A stretch of DNA of 64,000 nt. It comes from Phallusia mammillata. Its lineage: Eukaryota. This document shows, in pieces, positions 6,415 to 64,000 of this stretch. The stretch lies in NCBI GenBank assembly GCA_965637545.1, contig OZ281499.1:25978001-26042000 (forward strand). Direction: 5' to 3'. Both the position numbers and the translations under genes were made by a program. The notes below the pieces were generated by a model, which worked only from the letters and a program-made list of their open reading frames with translations, was not told the DNA's origin and ran no database searches. Position 1 is the first letter of the stretch. Every line of letters starts with the position of its first letter.

Positions 6415-9118
6415 TGGTAACAATTGTCGGATCTTGTTCAACACCAGGAGCTTGCGAACTATTATGTACGGGAGTCACGTGAGTATCTTTTTAGAGCAAC
6501 AAGTTTTACTTTGTTATGTTAAAATCCAACTGCTAACTGTCAGTCATATTGGGTGTGAAACGTGTACAATATGTTTTGTAATGAAGAAAAATGCAGGGGT
6601 TTGTTATGGAGAGACAATTCATTTAATTTCCACAGAGACACATGTGAAGCAGCATGTTGCAACGACGCCGATAAATGTAATGGTCGAGCAGCTGCAGACA
6701 TAGACGACATTGTAAGGTGTGCGACCGGAACATCAACTGATGCAATCCTGGCTGGCCGCATTACGTGCACAACAACACAACAATGTGGAAGAACCGAAAC
6801 ATCTGTCACAACAGATGGTAAGATCAGTGGCATAAATAACGGTAAAGACTGACTGTCAACGAATATTTTTTTGTTTTTAGGAAACACTGTAGTTACGACT
6901 GAGGGGTCTTGCCAAGACATGGGAGCCTGTGATATTTGCGGTGTCACTGAGTAAGCTTAGTTCAACGAAATGCTTACAAATATTCCAGTTTTGCATTACC
7001 AAAACAGTAGCATAAACGCGTTGCAAGATACTGATATGACTCAAATGGCATGAAACAATTCATGTAATTTTCGGTTGGATTTAACCAGTATATACCTCTG
7101 TCATTTTTTGGCAAAGTCAGCAGTTTAGTCAGATGCAAATTTGTACTAATGTCAAATAGGCCACGTCCTCTTAATCTCCTTATTGTTGTGTTCAGAGGAT
7201 GTGTGGATGCTTGCTGCAACAAAGCTGATTCCTGCAACACTTTGACAGTCGCTGTACAGACCGGCAGAGTTTGTATGGTTGGAACAACTACTACAGTTGG
7301 AAGCAATCCTGCAACGGGAAGTTTAATGGCCACACATTGCCATCCGAATCTTTACTGTGGAAGAACTGAAACCACCACAATAACAGGTGGGAAGTAATAC
7401 AACATATATGTTAACTTTTTGGTGTAATAAACCTTGCAACCAACATGGCTATTGTAGTAATTAATGCAAGGGTGTCCCACCCTCCCCAATATTGGTGTAA
7501 TTCGTGCTTTTTCGATTTTACAGACAGCGTGGACACAATGGTTGTTGTTGGATCATGTCAAGCTTCAGCAGACTCATGCGACTTGCTCTGTGCAGATGAT
7601 TCGTAAGTTTACAAGCTCACACATTCTACAAAAATCAACATGTTCAATAATGCACAATTTCAGAAACTGCGTCCGTGCATGCTGCAACGATGCTGACGGT
7701 TGCAACAGTGTTACGGTTGCTATGATGACAAGCACGCTAATTTGCCATGACGGGACAGTCCCTGGAACAACTTTAACCGCATCAAACCCTTGCACCACAG
7801 CAAACCACGTCTGTGCTAGAACAGAAACGACAACAGGCATTGGAGGTAATAGAAGCTAGAAACACCAAAAAAGCCTGAAACTTCTTTTGCGTTGCCAGTT
7901 TATCCAACAAAACTTTTGAATCTTAAAAATGTCACAGGCTAATAAATGGCTTAACAGTACCAATGCTGGTAACACAAATATTTGTTCCTTTTTTCTGGTC
8001 AAGTTTTTAACTTTATTGATCTGACATTCATGAAGTTATTGAGGCCACAAGAATATTAAAGCACGGGAAAAAATTGTTGGGTACAAAATGTGTGAATTTT
8101 TCAGCAACAGTAATTTTTCGACGTATTTGTTTTAATCTTATGTAATATTTTAAGATTCAGCCACGGTTGAAACCGTTGGATCGTGTCAAGCTCAGACAGA
8201 CTGTGCAACATTGTGTGACTCAGTTGCGTAAGTAAAATCAAAAATTTTCTTTCACTGCTTTGAACAGTGCCTAGTTCGACAAACATTTTTTACTGAGCAA
8301 TGGTTTAAGACGCCCAAACACCATACAACCGACAAGTGCTACTATAATTGTTGATATACTTTTTCCACAGAAACTGTGTGAGTGCTTGCTGCAGCAGTTC
8401 GGATCTCTGCAACAGTTTAACAGTGAGCCAACAAACTGCCCGAAACTGTTACGTTGGAAGTTCAACTTCCGACACACCAGTTATGGATATGACTTATACT
8501 CGGTGCGCTGCATCCGAACAGTGCGGAAGAACTCAAACCTCTGCAACATCTGAAGGTAAACGACAAACTTAGGGAAAGTGTAACACCTCATGATTTACAA
8601 TTGCCTGAAATACAAACCCAGTCAACAGAAAAAGACCATTTATTTTACGGTTAGTTTCTGTTTCACAATAAACAATGCTGTTTATATTCAGGTACAACTA
8701 CAGTAACTACAGTTGGGTCTTGTACAGAAGCAGCCGAATGCGATAACCTGTGTGCAGGGTAAGACCTGGGAAACTAGTTTGCTCCATTCTATTACTTAAC
8801 CGTACATATTTGTTGGGTAAGAGTTTTCGTAGCTTTTTGATTTGAAAGCAATAACATTGAAATTATAGACCGTCTGCTGCTGATTGCGTTTCCACATGTT
8901 GTGATGCTGATGGCTGTAACTCCGAAGTAGTCACGACCACGACAACCACAACTACAACAACAACTACTACTACCACCATCACCACACCACAAGCAACAGC
9001 TACCGCAACAACCACTACAACTACTGCAACAACAACCACAGCTGGTGCTAAACAGGCAGCAGAAATTAATATTATGGTGATGTTGGGTCTCTTGGTTCTC
9101 GGTTGGTTCATGGCTTAG
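6415..9118 (+). CDS. Gene A: multi-LU (three-finger-like) domain, Thr-stalk, GPI-type surface protein; 5' exons missing from window; >=5 domains
   Basis: Exons 6415-6478, 6636-6817, 6881-6950, 7196-7386, 7524-7602, 7664-7845, 8155-8227, 8371-8555, 8692-8758, 8869-9118. All GT-AG and phase-consistent. Repeated CxxxCCxxxxxCN motif, 41-aa Thr stalk, hydrophobic C-terminus GAKQAAEINIMVMLGLLVLGWFMA*. Confidence 0.88.
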
Positions 9119-9718: not shown

Positions 9719-9842
9719 CAGTGTTTCTTAAACTGTGTTCCGCTGACAAAAAGCGGGCAGGCATGACAACCTTTAGAAGCCTAATTTCTTATAGTTTAAA
9801 TAGTCTTGGCCTGCAAAAAATGCCAAAGTTTGAGAATCACTG
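9719..9842. mobile_element. Short hAT (Charlie-like) MITE
   Basis: TIRs cagtgtttcttaaact / agtttgagaatcactg; flanking 8-mers ctttaatg / ctttaaag (7/8 TSD). Confidence 0.75.
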
Positions 9843-16133: not shown

Positions 16134-19100
16134 ATGAGGGTCGGTTTAGTAGCGCCATTGTTGGTAATGCTGGCATATCCTGGGGTACAACCTGCTCATG
16201 GTTTGGATTGTTTTGTGGGAGATACATCAAGTGACCCTTTGGCAGCAACAACATGTGCCGGCGGCGAACTTTTTTGTGGAAGAACGGAAACTCATATTGG
16301 TAAAGATGCTGTGAACTGACACGTTATCGTTAATTTGTTTGACCATGCAACAATAATATTCCATAAAAACTGTGCTAATACAGACATCGTCCTAAACTGC
16401 ATGGTACACTGTAGGTCTTGTAAGAAATTGATGTGTATAATGTGAAAAAACATTAACAAACACACGATAAAGTGTTTTCTTTAAGTCAATGTGATCACAA
16501 ATTTTGATTTTGTGAATAACAAACTGATCAAAGAAACCGTAATAATGTTTGAAATCAGTGCCCCAAAATTAGGCAAAACCAACTTAACCAGTTTAGGCAC
16601 CGAAAATTCTGTTGGCCAGTGTAATATATTCCAAACTGAAGCTTTCAGTAAACTTAATCAGTCTCTGTTTTTCGTTACAATAAAGAAAGCTTCAGTTTTG
16701 TAAATAATGTTCGTTTTATAAATACATTCACATTTGTAACTAGGAGGAGGAACTTTAGAAATTGTTGGAACTTGTCAAGACACAGTAGCCTCGTGCGATA
16801 ATCTCTGCACCGGAACCGCGTGAGTAGAAAGTTTCAAACTGATGTAGAAAGTATCCGCAAATAAATATACATACCACATTTTAGTATTTAATTTACTTTA
16901 AACAACCGCCTGTGCAGAGAATGTGTTTCTGCATGCTGCAACGACCAAGATAATTGCCACCAAAAGTCTGTAACGGACATAAACAGAATAATTCAGTGTG
17001 GAATTGGGGACCTGATCAGTGAAGGAACGTTTGCTATGACTGCCGAGTGTGCAGTTGAAGAACTTTGCGGGAGAATTAGTATTGCTGGTAAATACTTTGT
17101 TATGTCGCCCTTGTGTGGGTACGCCAAATGTTGTAGTAAGATTAGGTCTGCAACTTGCCTGGATGGTCCGGAGCGCCTGATCCACACGCAGACATAAAAA
17201 AAACTTACCGGGATTCGTCCGCGGGAGCGCCATGAGTTCTATGGGTTTCAACATGCTTATAACTTATAGTTTGTTTGTTTTTCTTATAGATGCAGCGCGT
17301 TTTCCATCTTTTCGCCAATTGCGCCCTCTACTTTGTCGCGTTTTAAACGTCTCAACGTTTTGCAGCTATTTTCAGCGTGGTGAACATTTTAGGTCAATTG
17401 TGCTGCTAAGGTCTGTTTCACCCGGCGAAATAAACTCAACTCGATATCGTAAAAAAGATTATACTGCACCTTAAACGTGGCAGTCACGTAGGTTAGCCCT
17501 GTGCGTTTATAACAGTAAAAATGGATCTCTTTAAAACCATTAAACAATGTAGAAAAACAAACTTCTTCTTAATCGAGGCTATTTATTTTTAATTGAAACC
17601 CTTTCACAATTTGAAAACTACCGCTTTAACGTTCAACAAAACGTCTTTTTAATTGTATGCTTTACTGGAGAAAAGTTTTGCTGAGCCCAATAGTTTTTCT
17701 GCATGTGATAAACGGATTTCAACCTTCCTTGTATATAGGTTCTGACACTGGGTCGTGTTCAACAATTGCTCAATGTGATGAAAACTGTGTCGGGATATCG
17801 TAAGTACAAAGCTGAAAAAAATTCTATGTCTTACAAAAAACCGTCTGTTTAAAATTTGATGCATGTTTAAGGGATTGTACATCTGCGTGGTGCAATAACG
17901 CTGACCAATGCAATGTCCAATCAGTTGATCAAATGAGAGCCATATTAATGTGTGGAACTGGAACTTTATCTGGCGGAGTGTTTCCAACGACAACCACTTG
18001 CGGCGCTAACGAGCTTTGCGGAAGAACGGAAACTCAAATTGGAGGAAGTAAGTTTTGATGCAAAATAGGTTATGTTGATTTTTGTAGTGCGCTGGTTTTG
18101 AAACGTAATGCATCCAAACTAATCTTTTAACCAGTAACATGCCGCGGAGGGGGAGTAAGTTTGAACTTAATTTAATTTGCAGCCACAACTACTGTTGGAT
18201 CGTGTTCAACGCAAGTTGCCTGCAATGAGCTCTGTGTCGGTACGACGTAAGTATAAGAAACTTAGCGTTACGAATTGCAGTAGATTTGTAGTTGTTAAAG
18301 TAGACATAAACATTTACGTTTAACAAAAAAAGCAAATGGTAACTGTTTTGCAATTTTTCGCTGGACTTTATGAGATTTAATGTTGTTAGGGACGCATGTG
18401 TATCGGCATGTTGTAATGATGGCGACAACTGCAACACTCGGACAGTGGAAGAAATGAAAAACATTGTTCGATGTGGAACTGGAGTTTATCCGGGAGGTGT
18501 TTTAGAGACTTGTCAAGCTGGTTGGTTTTGTTCGAGAAGAGAAATTGGAAGCAATGTGTTTCTCCTAACCACGATAGATAATTTACTGTATAAGTGCATT
18601 TAGTTGATGGTAAGTTGTCTGATCATTAGATGATATCTGGTCTTAAGTGTGTAAAGTCTAGATCACTAACCGACCACTTGTTGGTCACAAAACAAAAGCA
18701 ATTTGTCTTTTTGGGGGTAGGAAGTTGGCAAAAAGGTGTAGGGGCGAGGACCCATACGCGGAAAATGGTTAAATTACACGACACATTTTAATTAGTGTTT
18801 GGATTTACTTTAAAAAAAACTTTTGCTTTTGTTGAGTCATAACAAAAAGGTTCCTCCAATAGACGTGCCAGAGGTTTCGTGTCAAAATGCTGCCGGATGC
18901 AATGTGCTGTGTGAAAACGAACTGTAAGTATTATTTCCATGAGTAAAGCAAAGTGCAATTTGAAAATAATGACGAGGCTTTTGTAATTGTTGTGGTATTC
19001 CTGTATACAACAGGCATTGCGCATCGGCATGCTGCAACAACGCTGACGGCTGCAACAGTTTGTCAGTCTCCGAACTTTCTGGCAGAGTATGTATGGTTGG

Positions 19101-20512
19101 AACAATCACCACAATTGGAAGCAATCCTGCAACTGGAACTTTGTTGGCAACAGATTGCAGCTCAGACACATTTTGTGGCAGAACTGAAACTACCACAACA
19201 GAAAGTAACTAAAAAAAATAATTTTATATTCAGCCACAGTTATAACAGTTGGATCGTGTCAAGCACAGAGCTCATGCGCGACACTGTGTGGCTCAACTCA
19301 GTAAGTTTTTAAATGCATTTTTTTAATTAAACTTTTGTTTGAGTTTCAATTAAATTAATTTCAATGTATACTTTTCGAACAGAAATTGTGTCAGTGCTTG
19401 CTGCAGCATATCGGATCTCTGCAACATTTTAACAGTGAGCCAACAAACAGCCCGAAACTGTTACGTTGGAAGTTCAACTTCAGACACACCAGTTATGGAT
19501 ATGACTTACACCCGGTGCGCTGCATCCGAACAGTGCGGAAGAACTCAAACCTCTAGCACATCTGGAGGTAATTACGTTTGTAAATTGGAGCAAAAACCAA
19601 AACTTAAGTTGCCCCAGCACATTCTAATGCAGTAGTTTTAGAACAAAATTAAATTATAGTTAGGAGCCATCCTATAACGCAGGGTTGCGTAGTTATACTT
19701 GGTGAAATCGTAGCTTTTTGAGGTGAATTCATTCCTAATATTTGCAGCGAATTTAACTTTAATCCAATTTTATCCAAAAAATACACCTTTAAAATGTGCC
19801 AGGGCACACAACAGCTTTGTTTTTAAATCAATCGACTTAAATTAAGTGGAATTGTAAATTTTGTACCAAATCCACAACAGTGGTATAATGTTTACAAGAA
19901 AACTCAGCTTTACTTGTTTAGGTACAACAACAGTGACTACTGTTGGATCTTGTATTGCATCAACAGAATGTGACACTCTCTGTGGAACGTAAGTTTAATA
20001 ACCATTACTACGTTGCAGTTAAGTTGAGCGTTGTAACTTGCTTCTTATTTGAGAAATTGAATATAGATTGTCATCTTGCTCTGACCAAACCACACTTTTA
20101 CTGACAAATAATTCTCAAAGCAAAAAACATAAAAAGTTCTCAGGGAAGTAAAAGTATTTGACAAGTAAGTTGATACGTTTTTAGTACGATCGACAGGGAT
20201 TAGATTTCACGCAATCAAAGAGGCGTTTGTTGAATGAGAGTACACATAACAGACTGGGCCTTTGGCTACACGCCAAATAACTACTGGTGTAATATTTCTC
20301 CCTTTCATAGGAACCCTGGCTGTGTTTCCACATGCTGTGATACTGATGGATGTAACTCACAACCTGTCTCAACTACAACCACCACCACTACAACAACCAC
20401 TGCTACAACCACTACAACAACTGTAACCACCACATCTGGTGCTGAACATGCAGCACAACTAAATATGTTGGTGATGATGGGTCTTGTGGTTCTCGGTTGC
20501 TTCATGGCTTAA
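16134..20512 (+). CDS. Gene B: signal peptide + 6 LU-like domains + Thr stalk + GPI tail; carries several lesions (possible pseudogene)
   Basis: Exons 16134-16299 (MRVGLVAPLLVMLAYPGVQPAHG-LDCFVG), 16744-16819, 16918-17087, 17739-17799, 17872-18047, 18183-18246, 18390-about 18553 (GT donor absent), 18863-18923, 19014-19204, 19234-19300, 19383-19567, 19922-19988, 20311-20512. Cys-to-Trp at 17888-17890; 29-nt intron at 19205-19233. Confidence 0.8.
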
Positions 20513-39563: not shown

Positions 39564-42500
39564 ATGGGTCAAGTACGTGCAGCCGTACTGTTGGCTGTTT
39601 TCTTGTGTGGCGTTTCGTTCAGTGATGCTCAGCCTGCGACATGTCTGGTTGGTACTGCTGGTGGTATAACTCAAACTAGCTGTGATAACAATGAACTCTT
39701 TTGCGGAAGAACCGAAACTGCTAGTGGCGGTAAGTCGTAACTTGGGACAAAATTATGATTTGTTTACAAGTGTGTTCGTGTATTGTAAGTAAAGTCGGTT
39801 GTAAAGATAAAATGATTGTAAATCGGCATAACATTAAAACACATAATATGTCAGTACAAGTGTACATGTTTATTTTTAACTAATACTGTGTATTTTTTAG
39901 ATCCTACAGGCGCATGTGTCGCAGATCTGGCCGCTTGCGACGCTCAATGCGCCGGAATGACGTAAGTAGAAATTAAATTAAAATATTCCAAATATGCAAA
40001 AAATGCCGCAATGGACATGTGCTTAGTAACGGTTAAGCGCAATTACCGAGACTTTTTTGGTCACTGCGAAGTAAGACGTTTTGTTGCATTGAGTTTGCCT
40101 GTAACGCTTATTTTAGGGGCTGTGTATCGGCTTGCTGCAATGATGCTGTCGACTGCAACACCGGGGTCGCAGCAATGAGAGGAACAGTGACATGTGGGGT
40201 TGGGGTACATGACGGCAGCGCGTTCGCTACCCCTGCAATGGCGTGTGACGCGGGAGATCTGTGTGGAAGGAAGGAAGTAACAGCGAACAATGGTGGTAAG
40301 AATATGCAGCCAACATCATAGTGTTTCTTTTGCAATAAATAAATAAAATATGTGAAACTATTTTGGCTGACAACAACGATTAATAAACTTGAACTAAAAA
40401 TAAAAACGAAAAAATGGAAGTAAACTGGTTTAAAGCTCACAGAGTTTCTAAGTTGACTGCTTTTTCAAAAGCAAATGCCATTGCATTTATTAAAAACATA
40501 CCTTTCACAGATGTAACCACCACTGGATCTTGTTCAACTGTGGCTGAATGTGAGGCACTCTGCGATAGTGACACGTAAGTGATGTTGAGTTTCTTTAAAC
40601 ACTTAGAAAATTCGGTATGCCACAAACACAAACAAAACGGATTTTTTAGATCAAATAAGTCCAGTGTCAGCAGGTTTAGATATTTTTTACATGTAGTCTG
40701 ATATTTTTACCATAGGAATTGTGTATCGGCATGTTGCAATGATGCTGACACCTGCAACACTCGGACAGTGACGCAGATGAGCAACATTGTGCGATGTGGA
40801 ACTGGTGCAAGCGCCACTGCAACACTGTTGACTTGTGCAGCTGGATCGCTTTGTGGAAGAAAGGAGGTTGGAGGCAGTAAGTGTGATTTGCAATGCTCAG
40901 TTTAAAGGTCGCAAGACCTGCTACAATACTTATGAATCGTACTAAAAGTTTGTATTTAATTGAAGCTCCAACAGTCACCGGAACATGTTCAACTCAAGCA
41001 GAATGCGATGCCCTGTGTGCTGATACTACGTAAGTTTGGAATAATGTTATAGCGGGGGGAAATTGCTTTACCACAGTTTTGGAAAATGTGGCAGAAGGTT
41101 CTGCAAATCAAATATAATTTGTTTTTCAATGCATTGCTAGGGTATTTATAATATACAAATGGGCCGAAGACAATGAGCAATCGAAGCCAGTTGATTAAAC
41201 GAATGTTAAATTTTTTAAATAAAACAGGAATATCGGAACCATCCGGCGCATAACAAGTTATGTTATTTAACCTGAATTAGGATTTCTACCATAAGCAAAC
41301 AAATTTAAGCATTATACTGTTTACAGAGACTGCACAGCTGCATGCTGCAACAATGCTGATGACTGCAACAGCCGAACAGTAGCAGAGATCGAAGCCAAAA
41401 TTGTATGTGGAACTGGAACTTGGGCTAACAATGCATTTCCTGCAGCCACTACTTGTGCCGCTGACGAGCTTTGCGCACGAACAGAAACAACATCAGGTTC
41501 AAGTGAGTGTCAGATACATACCTTGGTCATAACAACAATCGGTTGTACGTTACCAACACATAAAACTTGCAAACACATGATGCTTGTACAAATTTATGCA
41601 GTAACACTAGCAGATATCCCGAAGCTACTCTTGCTACAAAAGCGGGGAATAAGTTACCACATCTGATACATTGCCTTTACATTTAAAACACACTTTACAA
41701 ACTGCTGTCTGTAAAGTTCAGAAGTATACGCTATAAAGCTGTGTTTGAGTCAAAAGAAACGTCACTACCAGGACATCGGCATTTTGTTTGGAACGTTGGT
41801 GTCTTATTTCAATTTTTTAAATAAGACATTTCTCTTTCACAGCCACCACCATTGTCGGATCGTGTCAGACTCAGACAGCATGTGAGGGACTTTGCGACAG
41901 TGCAACGTGAGTTACGTGGCTTAAGCATAGATTGACACAAGTATTAATTTAACCTTATAAATGGATACTTCAAACATAAGTTTCGTATTGCGCTTAAAAT
42001 GTAATTTACTTTTGTAAACTACTTTCAAAAAATATCAAGCACATAATATTTGATCAGGTGTTGTTTATTTGCATGGAATAGGAACAAAATATGCTTTATA
42101 CCTCCCAGGTTTGCTAACATAGATAAAAACACAGATTTAGCACACTTTTGATTTAACATCACACTCCTAAACGGTAACTACTTTTTTGAGTTTAAGATAT
42201 CTAAGTTAAATATCAACATCGCAATATTATCAGGGGTTGTATATCGGCTTGCTGCAAGGATGGGGATTATTGCAACACTCGGGATGTAGCAGATATAGAC
42301 AACGTGGTTCTGTGTGGGACTGGAGCTGACCCAACTGCTGCATCAATGACATGTGCTGTTGGATCGCTATGTGGGCGAACATTAACTACAAGTAGGAAAT
42401 AAATCATGTTGTGGTTTATTAGAAAAGTTTTTTTACTGGTAGATATTTGTAGGCACTATTGCTGGAACTTGCTCGACCCAGGCTGAATGTGACAGTCTAT

Positions 42501-45441
42501 GTGCCGGCACTGGGTAAGTTTGGACGATTTGGTTATTGAATGTTTTTGAATTCAAAAAGGCCCTTAGAAAACCCAAAGTAAAGTGTTCTGTAAAAGAGCT
42601 TTTATTTTTTTGACCTGTGCGATATGATTCTTGCATTTCGAATTGTATGTTGTCACGTTACCCTTTTATCTCTTTCTTTAATTTAATTTTACAGAAGCTG
42701 CACATCAGCTTGTTGCAGTGACTCAGACAATTGTAACACCCGAACAGTAGTACAGATTGCAGGTAGAATAAGATGTGGGACTGGAACTTGGGCTAACAAC
42801 GCATTTCCTACTGCTACCACTTGTGCCGCTAACGAGCTCTGCGCAAGGACAGAAGTGTCAGGAGGTAAATAAACCAAACTTAATTTAGCAAACTGACATT
42901 TCCTTTCGAGTTTATACGATAATCCGTTTGGCCAAAAACCTAAACTGATGACTTTTTACTTGTACCGACAACCACACACAATAAATATTCCAACAGTTTA
43001 ACGTGTAACCCAAGTTGTGCATAGTGCAAAGTTCTACTTTGTAAAATGCCCAATCTTATTTCCAGGTGCTACAGAAGGATCGTGCCAGACACAAGCTGGA
43101 TGTGACTTGCTCTGTGCTGGAGTCACGTGAGTAGAATTTTCAACATACATAAAAATTGCTGCATCTTGTGATAAAATCTAACTCGCCAGTTATTTTTACT
43201 TTTACATTTATCTTGCGTTCATCGTTTTGCTTAACAACCTGCCTAGGTAGAAAAACATAAAATGTTAGATATTTTGCAGGGGTTGCACATCTGCATGTTG
43301 CAACGATGGAGATTTTTGCAACAGTCTCGCTGTAACTGACATAGTAGATGTGGTGCGATGTGCTACAGGATCCGTAACTGATGGAACACTCACTGGAACA
43401 ATGGTCTGCGCGTCCACAGAAAAATGCAGAAGACGTGAAACTACTTCGGGTATGAAACAGAGACAAACTTGTTTGAATGTTTAATCATACGAAATTACAA
43501 ACAACTAAATATGTTTAGGCGACGCTGTTACAACTGTTGGAGAATGTCTTGCTGACGGAACGTCTTGTGATGATTCGTGTGCTTCACCGTAAGTTAAAGT
43601 TAGCCAACGCCACAATGACAAGGATTTTTAGTTTTACCAAAGCAACAAAACGTCACATCGCAAAATCAACATTTGACATTTTCATACAATCAGCGTCAGA
43701 TAAAATCACTCACTGAGACTTTAATAACCACTTTGACAATTTTGCAGAGATTGTGTTGCTGCATGCTGCACAAACGACTTGTGCAATACCTTGACAGTCG
43801 CTGTACAGACAGGTATAATTTGTATGGTTGGAACAACTACTACAGTTGGAAGCAACGCCGCAACTGGAAGCATGGTGGCCACTCATTGCAATCCCAATAT
43901 GTTCTGTGGAAGAACTGAAACAACCACAACAGCAGGTAAAAACATCGTGCGGTTTAAGTCACAAAGTATCCGTCGGAATTTTTTAACAAAACCACAATTT
44001 TCAGACAACATGGACACAGTGGTTGTTGTAGGATCATGTCAAGCTTCAGCAGGCTCATGCGACTTGCTCTGTGCAGATGACTCGTAAGTTAACAAGCTCA
44101 CACATTCTACAAAAATCAACATGATCAATAATGCACAATTTGTAGAAACTGCGTTCGCGCATGCTGCAACGATGCGGACGGTTGCAACAGTGTTACGGTT
44201 GCTATGATGACAAGCACGCTGACTTGCTACACAGGAACGGTCTCTGGAACAACTTTAACCGCAACAACGGCCTGCACCACAGCAAATCACGTTTGTGCCA
44301 GAACAGAAACGACAACCGGAACGGGAAGTAAGTGTGATCAAATCTTAAAAACAAACGTAGAAAACTAAAAAACAACTGATGTACTTGCCTATTTGCTTTG
44401 CTCAGTCCAACCAATTCACTCAATTGTAATGTTTTTAGATTCAGCCGCAGTTGCAACCGTTGGATCGTGTCAAGCTCAGAGCGCATGTGCAACATTGTGT
44501 GGCTCAACTCCGTAAGTTTTATATGAGATATACGTTCATCTCATTGATCATTTATAGAATATTATATATTCACGATTACCTATATTAAACACCATTCAGC
44601 TTTTATTAAACACCACAACGACAAGGGGGTATTATAACCGGCAACACATTTTTCACAGAAATTGTGTGAGTGCTTGCTGCAGCAGTTCGGATCTCTGCAA
44701 CAGTTTAACAGTGAGCCAACAAACAGCCCGAAACTGTTACGTTGGAAGTTCAACTTCAGACACACCAGTTATGGATATGACTTACACTCGGTGTGCTGCA
44801 TCCGAACAGTGCGGAAGAACTCAAACCTCTGCAACATCTGGAAGTAAGTCTTGTGCGACGTTAATGCTATTTTTTCTCATGTACGAACCCTGACTAAAGT
44901 ACTGGCAAACGGCATTTACTCAATGTTATGAACTAAATGAATGAAACGAGGACATATACTTTTGCAGACATTTTTTCTAATGCTTTGCTAATGTTTAGGT
45001 ACAACAACAGTGACTACAGTTGGATCTTGTACAGCAGCAACTGCATGCGACACACTTTGTGGAACGTAAGTTTGAGAAAAAATATAATCATAAATTGATG
45101 CTACTTTATCAAATTTCAAGCAAACCTTTGCCCTTAACGTGTACGTAAATGTATTCATACAAACTTTGTCCCATCATAGGTGATAATAACATCATTGTCT
45201 TGTAACATGCATATTAACATACAAGCAGCAAAACATGATTATGTTATTTCACAGGGCGGCAAACTGCGTATCAACTTGCTGTGACACTGATGGTTGCAAC
45301 TCTGCCGCTATTGCCACAACAACAACCACGACTACAACCACTGCTGCAGCCACAACAACCACTGGTGGTGCTGAACATGCAGCACAAATTAATATGTTGG
45401 TGATGATGGGTCTTGTGGTTCTCGGTTGGTTCATGGCTTAA
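39564..45441 (+). CDS. Gene D: signal peptide + 10 LU-like domains + Thr stalk + GPI tail, intact
   Basis: Exons 39564-39729, 39901-39961, 40117-40295, 40511-40574, 40716-40876, 40966-41029, 41327-41502, 41843-41906, 42234-42391, 42453-42513, 42695-42864, 43066-43126, 43280-43449, 43519-43588, 43748-43935, 44005-44083, 44146-44327, 44439-44511, 44659-44843, 44999-45065, 45255-45441. Confidence 0.9.
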
Positions 45442-49504: not shown

Positions 49505-52500
49505 ATGTCTTTCGCTGGAGCAATAGCCGTGTTTGTCGCACTTCTGTGCGGCGTTGCGAATGGTTTGGATTGTCGCATAGGAACAATGACCCAGGATGGG
49601 TCAGATCCCACAGTTGGATCGTTTGTAACTGCAACTTGCCCAACTGACTATCAATGCTCAAGAACTCAAACAACTGCAGGTGTTTACATGTATATCATTT
49701 GTTAGCTGAAAACATACTAGCCATGTGTTTAACTGTTGCGCAACTCAAATTTATTTCAGGTACCGTCGTCACGACCGTGGCATCATGTTCTACATTCTCT
49801 GCTTGCGACAATCTTTGCCTTGGTGTAACGTAAGTTTGTGAAAAATAAAATCAGAAAAGAGATTAAGACGGATGTAAACATAAATCACTTTACTGTGCTA
49901 TTATGAAGTACTTTTTTAAAGTATACGCTATGGTTGCAGAGATTGTGTTGGAGCTTGCTGCAAAAATGCGGACAACTGCAACAATGATCCGGTGGCTACT
50001 ATGATTGGAACTGTCGACTGCATTACCGTCTTTGCGGCAACTACAAGCACAGAATGTTCACCTGGCGAAATGTGCGGAATAAAGGAAGTTACTGCAGGTA
50101 ATACTGGAGACTAGGGCGATTTTTCTTGTAAACATTACCGCTTGTTATACTTTTAGTCAATGGAGACGTAACATCCACAAGCACATGCTCAACTGCAACA
50201 GCGTGTACTACTGGTCTGTGTGACGGTGAAGCCCTGTAAGTAAGCAATACGTTATTACTCAACATTGTGCTGCAAAATACAACGTAAAATATATACGGCC
50301 GATTTAAGTAAATAAACTGATGGTCAACAATATTTGTTTGTGTAAATCTCAAGCGTTTGAGGACAAATCTTAACATCAACATTCAAGTCAAGAACGGCGT
50401 GCTTAATCATAGTGATTTTTTTAGTTTACTTTTAAACTCATTTCCACAGCGCGTGTGCAGCAGCGTGCTGCAACAACGCAGATGACTGTAACAATCAAGC
50501 AGCAGCAAATGTAGGCTTCCTCTCCTGTATTGGAGCCAGTGGATCTGAGGTTTGCACTGCTGGACAAGTTTGCGCCAAGAAAGAAGTTACTCCTGCTGGA
50601 GGTGAGTAACGAACAAGAGATGTGTTGGATAAGAATAAAGCACTTCAATAAAATCGGTGGACACATAATACATGATAATTATTGACTTCTATTTTTAACT
50701 AGAAAGGAGGTTTCTGACATACTTCCATTGTATGTATTCCATACGATATTTACCAATTTACTATACACATCATTTAATCTACACATATGATTGTTTTTGC
50801 AAGCAAAAACGAATGACCCCCCCCCTCCCCCCTCCCGAATGAGTCCCGATTTGTGCGGATTTACGGTAAACAAACGTCCTGGTTATTTTTAGATTCTTAA
50901 GGAAAAACTTAAGCAACTTTAGCAATAACCCAAACTTCAGCAATAACCCAAGTTTTATCAGTATTCTTTTTGCATCATTATTGTCATATAATTACAAACA
51001 ACAATGAATAGGAACAGGAAAAATACTTTCAATTTAATCTCATGCTTTGACCTAGATATTGTCGTTGCAGGTCAGTTTTTAAACACAATTTTCCAAAACT
51101 GAAAATGTGCTTGATAACTTAATAAAACGACATAGCATAGCTGCGCAAAAACAGCTCATTTCTGATCACCGACACGATTGTCTCGTAAAATGTCCGTCCG
51201 GACGTCAAGCTGAGCACGCCCTGCATTCGCCCACCTTAATCGTAAACAAGTGAATTACTCCCTTGAGAGTTGAGACTTATATCTGACTGACAATGTACAC
51301 ATCATGGCCTGTAAAAGTAACTATTTGGTCGATTGAGGCAAAATTTTAAATACTAAACGAATAACCTACTGCAATCAACTGTTTAACAGTTCAGAACATT
51401 AAGGCTTGAATTTCTGGGCCAAAACTTATTATTTTGGGGTTTAAGGGATAGGATAAAAATGGGTTTATCCAATAAAAAGTTACAAAATTCTTTAGAATAC
51501 CTTACATTGCACCAATCAACAAAGCATGAAACTCTCAGATTATGTATTTGGGTCAGTACAGCCGTTTAAAAAAAACACGTTTTGAGGGCCCGTGGGTGGA
51601 CCGCTGGGTCATTCGGGGTCAAACTTCTGGAGGATCATATTTGGATTAATAACTAACATCTGTCTAAATTTGAAGCACTCTTTCTTGACCAAACGCGTAT
51701 AACAAACCAGCGTCGGACAGAAAAAATACAGACAAAAACAATACCTTCGTGGAAGGGGACACATAATGACTAGTTTTAGCCAAAAAAATAACTTGTTTTA
51801 ACGTTTTACAGGGTCGACTACAACCACAGCCTCGTGTCAGGATCAAAATGCATGCGCCGGACTATGCACTGGTGAAACGTAAGTCAACATGAACCTTTAC
51901 AACCAACTTGGACGCTTAATACAATATTTCGCTTTTTCGTGTAGGGATCCATGTGTGTCAGCTTGTTGCTCGAACGCTGACGATTGCAACTCGGGAACCG
52001 TTGCTGAGATTACGGCCGCAAACGCGCTGAGAGTTTGTATGGTGGGAACTTTTACCCAGGATGGGTCGGCAGCTGCTTCTGGAGTGCTGACGTTTACGAT
52101 TTGCACGGCTAACCAGATTTGTGGAAGAACCGAAACGACAGGTAAGAAAATGTAAACCTGATGGTGTATTACAATTTCACCACTGCATTTATATTGAGAA
52201 AGAAACATCTCTTTAAGTTTTATTAAGCCAAATCTTTTTAAACAATTTTTCTTGTGCCAAACAAAAATTTCAATTAAGGTTTTTAATCTCTTGAATGTGC
52301 GTTTCAAAAGGTATAAGCCATATTTTCACCAGCGTTATGAAATAAAATTTACGTTATAACACAGAATATTTGAACAAAACAGTCAACTGAGTATGTGCTT
52401 ATGTGTTGTAAAGATTGTTGTTTTATCGGCCTTGTTTTGAAAAGCACAAATGTTTTTAACGCCAAGTAAACGCGATAATAAACATACTTGCTGTTTTTAG

Positions 52501-55500
52501 ATGGTACAGTTGTGACAACAATGGGATCATGTCAAGATTCTGTCGCCACTTGTGACGCTCTTTGTGCAGACACCGCGTAAGTTTTTGAATATGCATTGGT
52601 CCGATGCAACAATTCAACAATAATTCAATACTATGCATCATGCTAAATTTATCATAATTTCTGTTAAAACCTTTTTTCAAAGCACAGTTTTCAAAGTGTA
52701 GTTGCTCAGTCAAAAAAGTTTGTCCGAGTTTATTTCAGTATTTTTAACATCCATTTTATATTATTCAGGAACTGCGTGTCAGCCTGTTGCAATAACGAAG
52801 ATAACTGCAACAGAGAGTCTGTGGCTGATATGGGAGCAACAATTGCGTGTGGAACTGGAACAATGGCTAATGGAGCGTTTCCTACAAGCACCACTTGCAC
52901 CGCTAACCAGCTTTGCGCGAGGACCGAAATTGGCAATGGTAAAATTTTAAACCGCCCTAATAAAAAGTGAATAAAAATTTACAACATAATGTTAGAAATG
53001 CATTTTCATCGAATACAATAAAAAATGCCCGTGTTGGTAACATGCCCATCACATATCAAAACAAACAAACAAACCGTTTAACATTATTCACTGTAAAAAC
53101 AAAGAATTTGTCTGCAGCTGTGGAGGGATCGTGCCAGACACAAGATGCATGCGATCTACTCTGTGCTGGAGTCGCGTAAGTTGATTTTTTACATTTACCA
53201 ACAGAAAGGTGTGGCATGAAAAGCCACCATTTTCAATGTATCGACCTAATCAAACAAAAGGGGCGTTGTTTGCGGTTTTACATTATAAGAGAAAGGCCAC
53301 GTCTGTTATAGTGGGCTACACACGTAGTTGATCGTGTGCACGTCAAACTAGCAAAAACTTGTGTCATTTTATTGAAATATTTAAAGTATTATCAAGCGCT
53401 TTAACAGCAGTTATAATATTCATTTGGCACACACACACAAAATTAAATATTGTAACTTGTTATTTCGCTAACTCCCAGAAAAAATGGAAGTCAAATATAT
53501 ATATCAAATATAAGCTTTCAGGGTTTTTGTTTATTTCCTATCACAGGGGTTGTACATCAGCATGTTGTAATGATGCCGATAACTGCAACACTCGGACTGT
53601 GGCACAAATGCAAATGGTTGTTCGATGTGGAACTGGGTCTGCAACAGATGGAAACCTCCCTAACACAATGACTTGTGCATCTGGTCAACAATGCCAAAGA
53701 ACTGAAACCACTGCAAGTATGAAGTATTGCATTTTATAGTCGGTCGCGTTCATTACATGATTGACATCGGAATTATTATTGCAGGTAACGTTGTTACAAC
53801 TGTTGGAATGTGCATTGCTGGAGATGCCACGTGTGGAACTGGATGCGCTGCAGCGTAAGTTAAAAAGCACAAGCTTAAAGCTAAATTTAAGCTACAATTA
53901 ACCACCCGAAGCATAAACGTGGAGAAAAAAAATCAAAGAAAACGTGTAACGAGTTCGCACATTATTGTGGTCGTCAGTTCAAATAATAATGTCTTATACA
54001 CGCACAAGAAATCATTTTTGTTCAAGTACAGATCTTTAATGTCCTTAAATATTGTTCTTGTTTTTGCAGGGATTGCGTGTCAGCTTGTTGCAACGACGCA
54101 GATGGATGTAACACTCTGTCAGTGGCAACACAAACAGCAAGACAATGTTTGACTGGAATGACCACCCAAGTTGGAAGTGCAGCAGCAACTGGAAGTTTGA
54201 TTGCTACGCATTGCCCCGCTGGTGAAATGTGTGGAAGAAAACAAACCACAACCACAAGTGGAGGTAGACTGCCGTACAATGTACCAACATCTTAAACCAG
54301 TGCTCTTCAACCTTTTTTGTCTTGGTGAACCCCTAAACTTGTTGTGACGAACTCATGCACCCTGTTTACTTAAAAAGGTTAACTGAGATAAAAGCGATAT
54401 TAAAAATCATTATGCGTATCATCATGTCAATCAAACGGAGCGGAGATCGCAAAAATTGTTTAATTGCTACCAATACTCCAGCATATGTTCGCGAATTTTC
54501 TGTAAAACACCGGAGAAAAGGCCAAAACTCGATGTCCTAATACAGCGGTTCCCAAACTGGGGTCCGCGGTCCCTTAGAGGTCCGTGAGGCAATTTGGGGG
54601 GACCGCGAAGCGCTTGAAGTAGTTCTATAATCTTATTTGGCGTCAGTTTGTGCTTCTAAATCACTTTAAAATCAAAGTAGAATTGAGAATCGACTGCCTC
54701 CATTGCTAAACAATGGCCTTTATAGAATGACAACTATCAAAAATGCAATTGTTCGCGCACAATCGTAATGTTTTTGTCCTGTTTGTGATGTCACATGCTG
54801 TCTTTGAATGATTGTTATGCGCAATTTTGCATAACTGGCTAAAATCCTGCAATCAACTTTCGTTTTTATGAAATACACATTTAGGCTTAAGGCACGCGAG
54901 CCCTCGAAATAATGGCAAAGGGACCGTTTTGAGAAAAATATGAAAAAGTTTGGGAACCACTGTCCTAATATAATCCGACTGTAACGCAGACACGATCAAA
55001 CTTGACACGGGGATAAAACATTAAAAAAGTTCACCTTGGTTCACATCACATGAAACCTACGTCATTTTTCTAATATCCTCACAGTCAAATATTAATGGTT
55101 CGTTAAAAGTTTGTGATGCACCCTTGTATACCCCTTCGTACTGGTGCACCCCATGCACATTTTGTGTGTTCAAAGACAAACACAAGTTTAACCACCCATG
55201 TTAGAAGTGTGTTCAAGAAGTTTAAAATTGTGCATATATTTCTGCCTGCAAAAAAGTAATCAAACTAAAAAATCGCAAATACATATAATCTACACCATTG
55301 GATCGCAATACACACCAGGGGATGAGTACGACAATAACATCATTTTACGTATGTTTAGATGTGGCTACAGTGGTAACAGTTGGATCTTGCAGCACAGCAG
55401 CCGAATGTAACGATGGAAACATGCTTTGCAATGGGTGAGTTGGGAGGTTATGCACGCAATTCACCGCCTATTAGTCGTTCAAACAAAATCGGATGCCTAA

Positions 55501-55784
55501 CAGATACTTATATCATACCAAAGCTAAAATAGCTTAAAACAAAACAAACAAATTATTGCAAAATGGTGACAAAGTGTTTCTTATGCAGGGCTGCAGGTTG
55601 CATCGAATATTGCTGTGACACTGATGGTTGCAACTCTGCCGTTGTCACTACAACAACAACCACCACCACTACTACAACCACAACAACAACTGCAGCAACC
55701 ACCACAGCTGGTGCTGAACATGCAGCACAAATTAATATGTTGGTGATGATGGGTCTTGTGGTTCTCGGTTGGTTCATGGCCTAA
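49505..55784 (+). CDS. Gene E: signal peptide + 7 LU-like domains + Thr stalk + GPI tail, intact
   Basis: Exons 49505-49679, 49760-49829, 49940-50097, 50157-50235, 50450-50601, 51812-51878, 51945-52141, 52501-52576, 52769-52938, 53118-53175, 53547-53716, 53785-53854, 54070-54263, 55359-55434, 55589-55784. Confidence 0.9.
50697..51767 (+). mobile_element. Probable non-autonomous Helentron/DINE-like insertion in gene E intron
   Basis: Intron is about 1.2 kb versus about 0.1-0.5 kb for most cluster introns. Starts aactagaa; ends acagacaaaaacaata followed by hairpin ccttc-gtg-gaagg and cataat. Confidence 0.5.
54543..54962. mobile_element. hAT MITE (420 bp) in gene E intron, sister of 22084-22493
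   Basis: TIRs cagcggttcccaaact / agtttgggaaccactg; perfect 8-bp TSD tcctaata. Possibly nested in an older hAT-like element starting cagtgctcttcaaccttttt at 54298. Confidence 0.93.
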
Positions 55785-56815: not shown

Positions 56816-56973
56816 TTAAATTTCTAGCAACAAGCACGGCCGCATAAACTTGTATCTGCGGGCGCAGGTTGTACACTCCGAGGCAGACAGGGGTAACTTA
56901 AACCTTCGGTGTTAACCCTACTTAGTGCTTTGAAAAAAGACTTGCTCTGATAAGAACGCTGAAATCCAACTTC

Positions 56974-58147: not shown

Positions 58148-61100
58148 ATGGGTCAATTACGAGCAGTTGCACTGTTAGCGGTTTTCTTTGTGTGTGGCAT
58201 TTCGTTCAGTGATGCTCAAATTACGACATGTTTGGTTGGAACTGGTGTTGGAAGTGCTGTTGGTAATATTGCTCAAGATAACTGTGCAAGCAGCGACTTC
58301 TTTTGCGGACGAACCGAAACAGCGGGTGGTGGTAAGTCGTAGCTTGAGTTAAACTATGATTTGTTTATAAGTGTGTTCGTGCATTTAGAAGTAAAGAAGG
58401 TTGTAATAATAAGATAATTGTAAATCGGCATAACATTAAAAACACAATATATCAATACAAGCGTGCATGTTAATGCTGTGTATGTTTTAGATCCTGTCGG
58501 CTCATGTGTCGCAGATCTGGCGGCTTGCGACGCTCTTTGCGCCGGAATCACGTAAGTAGAAACAAAATCAAAAATGTTCCTAAACTTTTTTCATGGAAAC
58601 TCCGAAATAGACACGTACCTGGTAATGGTGAAGCGCAATTGCTTAGAATTATATGGTCACTGCATGGTAAAACGTTTTGTCTTACTGTATTTGCATGTAA
58701 CTCATTTTTCAGGGGCTGTGTATCTGCTTGCTGCAATGATGCTGTCGACTGCAACACCGGGGTCGCTACAATGCGAGGAACAGTGACATGTGGGGTTGGG
58801 GCAAATACCGGCGCTTTTCAAACCCCTGCAATGGTTTGTGACGCGGGAGATCTCTGTGGGAGGAAGGAAGTGACAGCGACTGATGGCAGTGAGTATGCAT
58901 AGTTGAGAATAAAGCTTTCTTTGGGGCATTAAACATACATGCAGTCTTTGAAGCAAACTATACACTTTTAATCACTTTAAAACGAACGATAACGTTTATG
59001 TAAAAAATTGCTTCAAAACAATAAACGTCAAATTTTAAAAAATACAAAGAACACTACAACATTTTACAGCTGAAACCATCACTGGATCGTGTTCAACTGT
59101 GGCTGAATGTGAAGCACTCTGCGATGGCGAAACGTAAGTTGTGTTTCGTTCTTTACAAACTTTACCCACAATGTGTTAATTGGCGACAAAACTATGTGAA
59201 AAATAACGTCAAGGGTCAGACGACTAAATCTTTTTATGTTTGGGCACGAAAATCCTTAAATTCTGAAACCAGAAATGCAATTGCACGCATATTCAAACTC
59301 AAATAATCGCCACTAATAACATGCAAAGTGTTGTTGTTGCAGGGATGCATGTGTATCGGCATGTTGCAATGATGCTGACACCTGTAATACTCAGACAGTG
59401 GCAGAAATGAGCACCATTGTACGATGTGGATCTGGGACGGACGCTACGGCCGCAATGCTGACTTGTGCATCGGGATCGCTTTGTGGCAGAACGGAAGTTG
59501 ATGGTGGTGGGTATTAATTTTAAAACGGCAATACTAATAATTTAATATTAAAATTAGAATTACTTATTCGCGCTTTTTGAATTCTATAAAGTAAAAATTA
59601 CATTCTGTAAAAGCATTGTGGGATAGCAATGTATGTGACAAATCGATCAATGGTTATTTTGTACGTTAAAACAAAGTGCCAAGCTTTCGCAAAACCTTTT
59701 TACAGGCGCCACAACCGGGAGTTGTTCCACAGCGATGGAGTGCGAGACGCTCTGCGGCAGTACCGAGTAAGTTAAAACGATATAATTATGGTTTATTTCG
59801 TTTTAACTTTTCTCCAAGCTCAGACTTAAAAGGAAAAATTGGTCCTTAAGAAAGACAGGAAAGTGTCACTAACTCTTTATTTGACTTCTCAGAAACTGTG
59901 TATCGGCATGTTGCAATGATGCTGACAACTGCAATACCCGCACAGTGGCACAGATGAGCAACATTGTGCGATGTGGAACTGGTGCAGACGCTACTACAAC
60001 ACTGTTGACTTGCGCAGCTGGATCGCTTTGTGGAAGAAGGGAAGTTACCGGAACAGGTATGGGATTGTTTAGCTTGCTTATATGAAAAGCACTGGTGCCA
60101 TGTTTCAAACATTAACATACATTGACTTTCAAAGTAGATGAAAGTGGACAAGGCAAACAATAGATAAATAATATTCGAAATTGGAACTGGTATAGTTTTA
60201 CATTTACCAGTTTAAAAAATTATAATAACCAACGCGCTTAGAAGCGACTGCAATCTAAAACGCCAGTGCAGCCAACATTTTAAAGTAGGTAAATGTCAAT
60301 GTGCGGATATATTTACCAAAGAACTTGTATCATCTTTCCAACATACTATTTTACACTTCTGAGAATTTTTAAACTAAGTTTGTGTTTTTGCTTAAAGGTT
60401 CAGCAATAACCGGATCATGTTCAACTCAAGCAGAATGCGACGCCCTTTGTGCTGGAACCGCGTAAGTGAGAAAAAGAATTGTTTAAATCAAAATAAAAAC
60501 ATCAAAAATCTATAGCAAGAAATTATAAATTATCGACGAAACTAATTGAAAACAGCAGAAGTGAAGCAACTTTACCATTAGCACAACGAACATAAAAGCG
60601 CATTTTTCTGCGACTAAAAATTACAAAAACCATTTTTTTGTTTCACAGATCTTGCACAGCTGCATGTTGTAACAATGCTGATAATTGTAACGCCCGAACA
60701 GTAGAACAAATGGAAGACAGAATTGTATGTGGAACTGGAACATTAAATGATGGAGCGTTTCCTGCAGCTACGTTTTGCGCCGCCGGGGAACTTTGTGCAA
60801 GGACAGAAACAACATCGGGTTCAAGTGAGTGTCAGATACAACACTTGGTCATAACAACAATCGGTTATTAGTAACCAACACAGGATGCTTACTGCCTAAT
60901 ATCCCGAAGCTGAAAAACAATCTTGGCGCTAGGCGGAGGAAAGGCAACTCATGTGTTACATTGAATTCACATGTTAAACGCTCATAAAAACCGACTTTGC
61001 AAAACACTCACTATAAAGATTAGAATTGTATGCTATAAAGGTACATTGAAGTCAAACGAAACGTCACTACCACGACATCGCCCTCTTGTTTGGAACGTTG

Positions 61101-64000
61101 GCATCTTATTTCATTTTTTAATAAGACATTTCTCTTTTACAGCCACCGCCATTGTCGGATCGTGTCAGACTCAGACAGCATGTGAAGGACTGTGCGACAG
61201 TGATACGTAAGTTATGTGGCTTAAATAACTCACTGGAAGCATAGAAGATTCATCAAACACAAAAATTAGTTCAATCTTTAGCTAATAAATGGGATTAAAA
61301 TAAATGGATAATTACCAACTTTTCTGTAGCGCCGCACATTTAATTTACTTTTTACAGACTACTTCTTGCTGTTTTTCATCACAACATAATATTACAACAA
61401 AAAGTAGTTTATACCTAATCCGTGTACATAACATAGATGAAAACCAATACACACCTTTAAGATAAATATCGACATCACATTATTATCAGGGGCTGTATAT
61501 CGGCTTGCTGCAAGGATGGAGATTATTGCAACACTCAGTCAGTAGCAAATATAGACAACGTGGTTCTGTGTGGGACTGGGTCTGACCCAACAGCGGCATC
61601 GATGACTTGCGCTGCTGGATCGCTATGTGGGCGAACATTAGATGGAAGTAAGAAATAAATCCTGTTGTGGCCTATTAGAAAAGTTTTTTTTTTTACTTTG
61701 ATATATTTTTAGGCACTATTGATGGAAGTTGCTCAACCCAGGATGAATGTGACAGCCTATGTACCGGCACTGCGTAAGTATGGGTCAAAAAATATTCACA
61801 AATTAAATTGTGCTGCAATCAAGCGGCGAAAACCTAGTGCGATTTAGTTATTTGAATTTTGATGCTTATAAATAAAATCAAAAAGGCCCTTAGAAAAAGA
61901 CAACCGAAAGTCAAGTGTGCACTAATTTTGTTGATCTGTGCAATATGTTTCTTGCATTTCGAATTGTATGTTGTCACGTTTCATTTTTTACCTTATCTTA
62001 ATTTAATTTTACAGAACCTGCACGTCAGCATGTTGCAGTGACTCAGACAATTGTAACACCCGAACAGTGGTACAGATTGAAACCAGAATAAGATGTGGAA
62101 CTGGAACTTTAACTGGTGGCGCGTTTCCTACAGCTACCACTTGTGCCGCTAACGAGCTCTGCGCAAGGACAGAAATAACAGGAGGTAAATAAGCCAAACT
62201 TTGTTTAGCCAGCCTACATTTCCTTTAGACATTCTTCCGTTTCGCAAAAAAACTCCCATTAGGGACTTTTTACATGCAACTATGCCTAAAACTGACAACC
62301 ACACACAACAAATTTTCGTCCTGTTTAACTTGTAACCAAATGAAGTTCTATATTGTAAAATACCAAAACTTATTTTCAGGTGCTACAGAAGGATCGTGCA
62401 AGACACAAACTGGATGTAATTTGCTCTGCGCTGGAGTCACGTGAGTGAATTTTTCCACGTATATGAAAATTTCTGCAACTTGTAATAAAAGCTGACATAT
62501 AGTTAGTTATTTTAACTTTCACATTTATCTGGCGTGCATCGTTTTGCTTAACAACCTGCCAGAGTGAAAACATTAAATGTTGGATATATTGCAGGGGTTG
62601 CACATCTGCGTGTTGCAACGACGGAGATTTCTGCAACAGTCTTTCTGTTACGAACATAATAGATGTGGTCCGATGTGGAATTGCGCCTGTAACGAACGGA
62701 GCATTCACTGCAACAATGGTTTGTGCATCTGGTCAAAAATGTCAAAGAACTGAAACAACTTCAGGTATAATCTGTTGCATAAAAATCTTTATCTTCATTC
62801 ATTACATAATTAAAACTGGGTTTATTTTTCAGGCCAAACTGTTACACTTGTTGGTTCATGTATTGCTGGAGATGCCACATGTGGATCTGGATGTACTGCT
62901 CCGTAAGTTTAAAAGCTCTAATGCTATCCAAATTGTTATCATGTCAACTTTAAATTGTCACAAAAAATTGAATCCAGCGTTCGTGACAACAAACAGTTAC
63001 AACTTGGAAGGAAACGGGTAGACAAAATCGCAAAGTCGACAGAATAAGGATATTTTGATTTGCAAACCGTAACATACTGATAGCCAATTAAAATTCGAAC
63101 TTTCTTAACTCGTTCCCTAGTAGGGAAAAGATCCAAACTTTATTTTAGTTTTTATGACTTAGCACTCAGATAAACACTTTTGTTTATTGGTTGCAGGGCT
63201 TGCGTGTCAGCTTGTTGCAACGACGCAGATGGATGTAACACTCTGTCAGTGGCAACACAAATGGCAAGACAATGTTACACTGGAACAACCACCCAAGTTG
63301 GAAGTGCAGCAGCAAATGGAAGTTTGACTGCTGAGCATTGCTCCGCTGGTGAAATGTGTGGAAGAAAACAAACCACAACTACAAATGGAGGTAGATTGCT
63401 GTCACAGTTACAATGCATCAACATCTAAAACTACAAACAACATCAATATACATAAACGCATTCAACCAACGAAGTCGTACATGTATTCGAAATACGCCAA
63501 GAATTTATGCCTGCAAACTGTACGCTTGTCATACAAAGCGTAAACATTACTTAACAACACACAAAATTACAATAGACATGGTGTTTAAGAAGACAATAAT
63601 ATATTTAATTTGTTTAGGTGAGACTACAGTGACAACAGTTGGATCTTGCAGCACAGCAGCTGAATGCAACGATGGAAACATGCTTTGCAATGGGTGAGTT
63701 GGTTATGCAAGCATTTGACCGTCTATTAATCGCCTAAACAAGATGTAGATGCCTATACTAAAAAAATACTCGATACCATGGCGTGCAACATTACAGCACG
63801 ATTATTAATATTGCAATAAGGTGAAAAAATCTTTTGCAGGGCTGCCGGTTGCATCGAATATTGCTGTGACACTGATGGTTGCAACTCTGCCGCTGTCACT
63901 ACAACAACCACAACCACCACTACTACAACCACTACAACAACTGCAACAACCACATCTGGTGCTAAACATGCAGCACAAATTAATATGTTGGTGATGATGG
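58148..64000 (+). CDS. Gene F: signal peptide + 9 LU-like domains + Thr stalk + GPI tail (last codons outside window)
   Basis: Exons 58148-58331, 58491-58551, 58713-58888, 59070-59133, 59343-59506, 59706-59766, 59893-60056, 60398-60461, 60649-60824, 61143-61206, 61490-61647, 61713-61773, 62015-62184, 62380-62440, 62595-62764, 62833-62902, 63197-63390, 63618-63693, 63840->64000. Confidence 0.9.

Follow-up and report, generated by a model that had tools for sequence, protein, structure and literature searches.

The stretch of DNA analysed here (the window) comprises 64,000 nucleotides of AT-rich eukaryotic DNA from the ascidian Phallusia mammillata, located at C6:25,978,001-26,042,000 of a 240-Mb assembly (C6 is contig OZ281499.1). 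Six tandem genes, designated A to F, were found on its + strand, all built from repeated domains with ten cysteine (Cys) residues. Gene A extends upstream of the window, gene B is probably a decayed copy, and gene F runs past the window end. The six genes are part of an array of approximately 24 genes, all on the same strand with intergenic spacers of 2.4-10 kb, which covers at least 340 kb. (Array-wide counts given below refer to 342 kb, that is the window plus its flanks.) This region contains 24 tail exons and encodes approximately 200 ten-Cys domains. The gene family appears to be restricted to the ascidian lineage, and a search of the tunicate literature did not reveal a description of this ten-Cys gene family.

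In a six-frame motif scan of the window, 43 + strand exons encoding CxxxCC(x4-6)CN were identified. Thirty-five of these (long exons) read on in frame through a linker of approximately 12 residues and three more Cys, and end near the sequence CGRTE. The other eight either are broken copies or encode a Thr run and then a hydrophobic C-terminus. Successive long exons are separated by one short exon, which encodes GSC-x5/6-C-x3-C or a near variant (the search motif was [GA]xC-x4-7-C-x2-6-C). The first coding exon of each gene encodes Met, a signal peptide and Cys1-3, whereas the last exon encodes Cys7-10, a Thr-rich stalk and a tail of the glycosylphosphatidylinositol (GPI) type. Since the protein begins with Cys1-3 and finishes with Cys7-10, the register of the domain must be from Cys1 to Cys10. 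In this register a long exon encodes Cys7-10 of domain n plus Cys1-3 of domain n+1, and a short exon encodes Cys4-6. Two introns interrupt each domain internally, one behind Cys3 in phase 1 and one behind Cys6 in phase 2, and domain boundaries are free of introns. The genomic unit is a pair consisting of a short and a long exon, which is shifted by approximately one third of a domain. When the genome was searched with a long-exon profile, all of the best 150 matches (150/150) fell in C6:25.92-26.26 Mb on the + strand.

Gene models were assembled by a script that joined exons only for frame continuity and Cys counts. Four of the models were open from the first exon onward. Gene C (30782..36064) has 17 exons and encodes 711 amino acids with eight ten-Cys domains; its first exon (30782-30947) supplies Met, the signal peptide and Cys1-3, and its terminal exon is at 35872-36064. 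Gene D (39564..45441) consists of 21 exons encoding 860 amino acids and ten ten-Cys domains. It begins with the exon 39564-39729 and ends with the exon 45255-45441, and its long exons start at 40117, 40716, 41327, 42234, 42695, 43280, 43748, 44146 and 44659. Gene E (49505..55784; 15 exons, 635 amino acids, seven domains) extends from the first exon 49505-49679 to the terminal exon 55589-55784 and contains two long introns of 1.2 kb and 1.1 kb. Gene F (58148..64000; 19 exons, at least 764 amino acids, nine domains) starts with the exon 58148-58331 and exceeds the window, as its terminal exon begins at 63840 and continues past the window end. The chained C to F models have exactly 10 Cys per domain; the first segment has 11, owing to an extra Cys in the signal peptide.

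Of gene A the 3' part (6415..9118) lies in the window. It is open, with Cys counts of 10/10/10/10, and consists of five short exons (6415-6478, 6881-6950, 7524-7602, 8161-8227 and 8692-8758), four long exons (6636-6817, 7196-7386, 7664-7845 and 8371-8555) and a terminal exon (8869-9118) encoding Cys7-10, the Thr stalk and the hydrophobic tail. Upstream, at C6:25,971,989-25,975,625, there are seven further long exons with short exons between them and no intervening tail exon. Gene A is seemingly split by an intron of approximately 8.6 kb (window 1-6414 plus C6:25,975,800-25,978,000). This intron has a higher GC content (47% in 1-4000) and a 33-bp tandem repeat at 4730-4847. No open reading frames (ORFs) recognisable by Pfam were found in it. 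It may hold an inserted element.

Gene B (16134..20510) opens with a signal-peptide exon, continues with short and long exons in alternation and has its tail exon at 20311. In exon 17872-18047 one CC is changed to WC, the phase-1 donor is absent after exon 18390, intron 19205-19239 measures no more than 29-35 nt, and no choice of donors gave a full-length open frame. It is on account of these four defects that gene B is regarded as probably decayed. A pseudo-fragment at 37571..38035 (+ strand) is a copy of the last long exon of gene C (its Cys1-3 half) together with the tail exon. It is 84.7% identical to 35453-35956, and its tail frame is broken past the Thr run. In an intron of gene C a tRNA-like match was detected on the - strand (32526-32599) at the Rfam threshold (29.5 versus 29 bits); it may be a short interspersed nuclear element or a tRNA relic.

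Phases of the long and short exons

Splice sites were assigned by taking the top-scoring AG and GT for each exon core with a crude score that ignored phase. In the window, 31 of the 37 long exons were scored as phase 2-1 and 37 of the 42 short exons as phase 1-2 (together 68/79). The corresponding values for the array were 180/191 and 174/186 (together 354/377), and 21 of 24 tail exons had a phase-2 acceptor. In the exceptions within the window the crude score had favoured a more distant AG or GT. An initial annotation of the window had proposed, for the interval 6636-63839, that long exons are phase 2-1 and encode the end of one domain plus the start of the next, and that short exons are phase 1-2 and encode Cys4-6. 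Both statements were borne out by this phase-blind assignment. (Position 6636 is the acceptor of the first long exon, and the last intron of gene F ends at 63839, directly ahead of the terminal exon.) Phases this regular are far from what chance would give. The exons are, however, copies by descent and are therefore not independent observations of phase.

Long exons were 137-230 nt in length (median 176), and all those scored as 2-1 leave a remainder of two when divided by three. Short exons measured 52-106 nt (median 67), with a remainder of one for all those scored as 1-2. The summed length of a short and a long exon is thus a multiple of three, and therefore gain, loss or exchange of a pair keeps the reading frame. 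The codons that would arise at the junctions were computed for all combinations of exons of genes A, C, D, E and F, i.e. 1482 long-donor with short-acceptor and 1521 short-donor with long-acceptor junctions. There was no stop codon among the 3003 junction codons. This agrees with the earlier claim that any donor can be joined in frame to any acceptor of the same class. It had also been claimed that skipping or swapping of a short plus long pair preserves the frame and still gives a ten-Cys domain, and the phases and the chained models lead to the same conclusion.

The position of one junction could be verified in a paralogue outside the window (L004:799-1035; C6:26,055,298-26,055,534), in which an intron has been lost and the frame is continuous across the long/short junction. 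The uninterrupted frame of this fused exon confirms both the position and the frame of the junction. Neither a retrocopy nor a fused short plus long exon, either of which would have provided an uninterrupted natural domain, was found in the 342 kb.

The Cys framework was intact in 199 of 222 long-exon matches and in 192 of 194 short-exon matches of the array; the long-exon matches lacking the full set were mostly first and tail exons. The same architecture was encountered in a genomic contig of 1683 nt from another sample (Logan DRR090687), in which short and long exons, three of each, alternate as in the array. By eye, its first long exon has the same phases as the array exons. Only the exons of this contig could be aligned with the array, at 67-79% identity. 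Since alternation and phases are shared although the exons are at most 79% identical, the offset exon architecture must be older than this species.

Nature of the ten-Cys domain

The ten-Cys domains are 73-91 residues long and follow the pattern C1-x8-20-C2-x5-6-C3-x~13-18-C4-x5-6-C5-x3-C6-x~5-C7-x3-C8C9-x4-5-C10-N. They fall within the definition of LU domains as 8-10 Cys in approximately 70-90 residues ending with CC-x4-CN; most internal domains end with CC-x5-CN, and the terminal and some internal ones with CC-x4-CN. The first four Cys spacings and the terminal CC...CN resemble those of three-finger/LU domains. The N-terminal LxCxxC of ten-Cys LU domains was found in none of the array domains, where Cys1 and Cys2 are separated by 8-20 residues, whereas canonical LU exons elsewhere in the same genome carry CxQC.

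Searches for an established domain were made at several levels. Pfam searches at the exon level (E<=10) with ten long or terminal exons, the fused exon and two database matches gave only low-complexity noise on the Thr stalk. When the genome was searched in six frames with PF00021, PF00087 and PF16975, matches to canonical LU exons were obtained on other contigs, but the array gave none. A sequence-profile search of the PDB with array exons yielded no match, and when the family profile was compared by hhalign with this genome's canonical LU exon halves, the probability was 0.2%. These negatives for the LU clan rest on exon-level queries and are hence weak. The fused exon gave no candidates in a word-index protein search. 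A HMMER protein search with the long-exon profile found only two exon-sized ORFs, one of them on a 1.7-kb Logan contig. Look-alikes in the ESM Atlas did not exceed 0.79 and were uninformative.

The fused, intron-less long plus short exon was also modelled with AlphaFold2. The model had a mean pLDDT (predicted local distance difference test) of 55, and hairpins were predicted at residues 26-32/38-43 and 48-55/60-67. In this model of pLDDT 55, the site of the former intron coincides with residues 56-59, at the turn of the second predicted hairpin. Comparison of the model with the PDB by Foldseek gave no match at E<=0.001, and a wide VIA-align search gave no match at Z>=2. No paired Cys losses that would hint at disulfide partners were found across the array. 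An LU topology would imply a C5-C8 disulfide and a further one, C6-C7, that closes the tip of a short third finger, with the second intron placed in the C6-C7 loop.

The initial annotation had placed the introns at the tips of fingers 2 and 3. For the first intron this is weakly favoured by its location at the predicted turn of the Cys3-Cys4 hairpin. The assignment of the second intron is deduced from Cys spacing, and the three-finger fold itself found no match in any profile or structure search. By its motif the domain resembles LU domains, and its membership in the Ly6/uPAR family is unproven.

The encoded proteins are probably secreted, GPI-anchored glycoproteins, to judge from the signal peptide, the seven to ten or more ten-Cys domains, the Thr-rich stalk and the hydrophobic tail. 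Multi-domain proteins of the Ly6/uPAR family are organized similarly: uPAR/PLAUR has three LU domains, C4.4A/LYPD3 two, and CD177 two in human and four in mouse. Signal peptide, tandem Cys-rich domains of approximately 80 residues, the CC-x4/5-CN ending and the GPI-type tail are common to these and to the array proteins, and in both groups a domain is encoded by several exons with an intra-domain intron. A typical LU gene has three exons with the mature domain on two of them, and mammalian proteins contain at most four LU domains (PMC4839075). In contrast, the array proteins have seven to ten or more domains, lack the N-terminal CxxC and have an extra Cys pair between Cys4 and the CC. The array genes also lack an intron at the domain boundary and have a second intra-domain intron, which brings the exon pair out of register with the domain.

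Mosaic paralogues and the origin of the array

The number of domains differs among the paralogues (7, 8, 9 or 10), and the modules have diverged to 60-90% identity. Gene D is a mosaic. Its exons D00-D11 resemble gene F (77-92%), D12-D14 resemble C08-C10 (88-91%, introns included), and D14-D19 resemble A03-A08 (79-96%). A similar relationship was seen for the end of gene F, where F16-F18 resemble E12-E14 at 91-97% and C14-C16 at 82-89%. Relative to gene D, gene F has one extra long plus short pair (F04-F05).

The switch of gene D from F-like to C-like sequence was located in the segment 43280..43935 (+ strand). The alignment between D and F stops at 43453/62768, which is the donor of the long exon 43280-43449 (62595-62764 in gene F), and the segment 43273-43943 of D is 87% identical to 33889-34552 of C. 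Downstream of the break one series of modules is present in D and C, and another in F and E. In the domain across the break the Cys1-6 type is common, and the Cys7-10 part differs between D/C and F/E. This domain is a natural hybrid. That the paralogues differ by whole pairs and are mosaic indicates that recombination or duplication at the level of the pair has occurred in the germline, and that hybrid domains were tolerated. The suggestion that chimeric domains arise by splicing or by recombination can be upheld for germline recombination, as a statement about evolution, on the strength of these mosaics; no feature supporting it was found for splicing.

The ratio of nonsynonymous to synonymous substitution rates (dN/dS) was 0.31 for the D-F comparison (503 codons), 0.21 for D-C and 0.28 for D-A, indicating that the array genes are under purifying selection. 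For the last modules of E and F (54070-55784 versus 63197-64000), which are 91-97% identical, the ratio was approximately 1.2, but at this low divergence the 86 codons compared offer too few sites for the value to be interpreted.

In our view the array is quite probably the result of tandem multiplication of an offset exon pair in a family of surface proteins, with repeated reshuffling in the germline and with constitutive splicing as the default. The process could have started with duplication of a single-domain, three-exon ancestor. The tail exon of one copy would then have fused with the head exon of the next, creating the first long exon, and unequal crossing-over, or duplication with end points in introns, would have multiplied the short plus long pair. 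Descent from one duplicated exon pair best accounts for the uniform phases of the modules. Gain, loss and exchange of pairs have recurred in the germline, as the paralogues show, always in frame, and by default the exons of each gene would be spliced constitutively to give one protein of its own. The likely function of these proteins is binding or recognition at the cell surface.

Several points weigh against this explanation. Constitutive splicing is an assumption. The donors of long exons are less uniform than those of short exons (GTAAG in 64 of 180 versus 146 of 174), which leaves room for some regulated skipping without being evidence of it. The three-exon ancestor and the fusion step are reconstructed rather than observed. 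The GPI anchor is predicted solely from the C-terminal sequence, the function in binding or recognition is deduced, and the LU fold is unproven.

It is hardly conceivable that these are functionless pseudo-exons forming a decaying, satellite-like block. Gene B is indeed broken, and so is the tail fragment at 37571-38035, but four of the six genes in the window are fully open over 15-21 exons and 635-860 amino acids, and the ten-Cys framework is retained in approximately 200 domains. The open frames, together with purifying selection (dN/dS of 0.2-0.3), contradict this interpretation. Another alternative is regulated combinatorial splicing. In this case pairs would be skipped or swapped within a gene, or spliced across neighbouring genes in the manner of Dscam or the protocadherins, to produce a large repertoire of hybrid domains. 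Several observations would suit such a mechanism: every junction is in frame and free of stops, hybrid domains are tolerated as the paralogues bear them, the genes share one strand and are 2.4-10 kb apart, and the long-exon donors are more variable than the short-exon donors. However, every gene is equipped with a start and signal-peptide exon as well as a stop and GPI-tail exon of its own, and constant exons common to several genes are absent. A scan of gene D for inverted repeats gave just six pairs, which were weak (17-23 nt) and had no arm in common. The acceptors have good polypyrimidine tracts, and 169 of 174 short-exon donors are GTAAG or GTGAG. As duplication explains the equal phases, selection for splicing need not be invoked. 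Spliced multi-domain products were not found in the HMMER protein search, which is weak evidence. On balance we consider combinatorial splicing very unlikely.

The array could also be a polymorphic recognition locus, serving for example allorecognition or self/non-self discrimination of gametes, in which frequent unequal crossing-over and conversion at the pair unit give each individual its own number and combination of modules and the offset register is kept for the hybrid binding domains that it creates. The mosaic paralogues, the pair-unit differences between genes and the large size of this lineage-restricted, same-strand array are in keeping with such a role, as is the dN/dS of approximately 1.2 in the last modules of E and F, with the reservation on its 86 codons made above. 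On the other hand, the overall dN/dS of 0.2-0.3 is that of ordinary purifying selection, and a single genome was examined. We regard germline diversification of this kind as unlikely. An extended form of the proposal, to which we give slightly less credence, would be a recognition locus whose offset pair is used chiefly in germline recombination, and possibly also in pair-skipping, to give individual-specific hybrid ten-Cys domains, these having a new fold or being a strongly derived three-finger variant with the fifth disulfide in the third finger. Tunicates are known for self/non-self recognition, and if true, regulated pair-skipping or individual-specific sets of modules would constitute a notable new mechanism of diversity.

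The multiplication of an offset pair by germline events has a precedent in apolipoprotein(a), where a two-exon unit of in-frame total length, which has been multiplied in tandem by unequal crossing-over, encodes the kringle IV type 2 (KIV-2) domain. As in LPA KIV-2, the unit of the array consists of two exons, is divisible by three and differs in copy number, here between paralogues. LPA, however, is a single gene with near-identical repeats, whereas the array has diverged modules in approximately 24 genes, and its unit is shifted relative to the domain. With Dscam1 and the clustered protocadherins the array shares only the tandem arrangement of many phase-compatible homologous exons. In Dscam1 alternative exons compete for one position and are selected by docking/selector RNA pairing, whereas in the array each exon represents a different position in the chain, and the inverted-repeat scan of gene D revealed no conserved complementary intron elements of the docking/selector type. 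The protocadherins splice variable first exons to shared constant exons, but each array gene has its own start and tail. The combinatorial potential of the Dscam/protocadherin kind envisaged in the initial annotation thus reduces to an arithmetic possibility.

The exon arithmetic shows that parts of a multi-domain gene can be added, removed or exchanged in frame although exons and domains are offset from each other. As a large array missed by Pfam and evidently under purifying selection, these genes are candidates for an unstudied family of cell-surface binding proteins in tunicates.

Other features of the region

At the upstream end of the array (C6:25,943,930-25,966,000; L021, L007 and L022) the genes are shorter and contain distinct module types repeated several times, for example CRSACCNDRPNC and CVAACCQNDEC. 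Genes D and E are separated by a spacer that contains a tandem repeat (46323-46941) with a period of 159/317 bp, 3.9 copies and 88% matches. Pfam scans of ten ORFs outside the array genes in the window gave no match.

In the genome there are 3179 occurrences of the 16-nt ascidian spliced-leader word with GT directly behind it, compared with 0 for the reversed control. Long tandem arrays of the word with a period of 553 bp are present at C3:11,108,338-11,147,465 and are presumably clusters of spliced-leader RNA genes. The start codons at 16134, 39564 and 58148 are preceded, at a distance of 28-50 nt, by good acceptor-like sites consisting of a polypyrimidine tract and cag. Their location fits either spliced-leader trans-splicing or the presence of an upstream exon of the 5' untranslated region.

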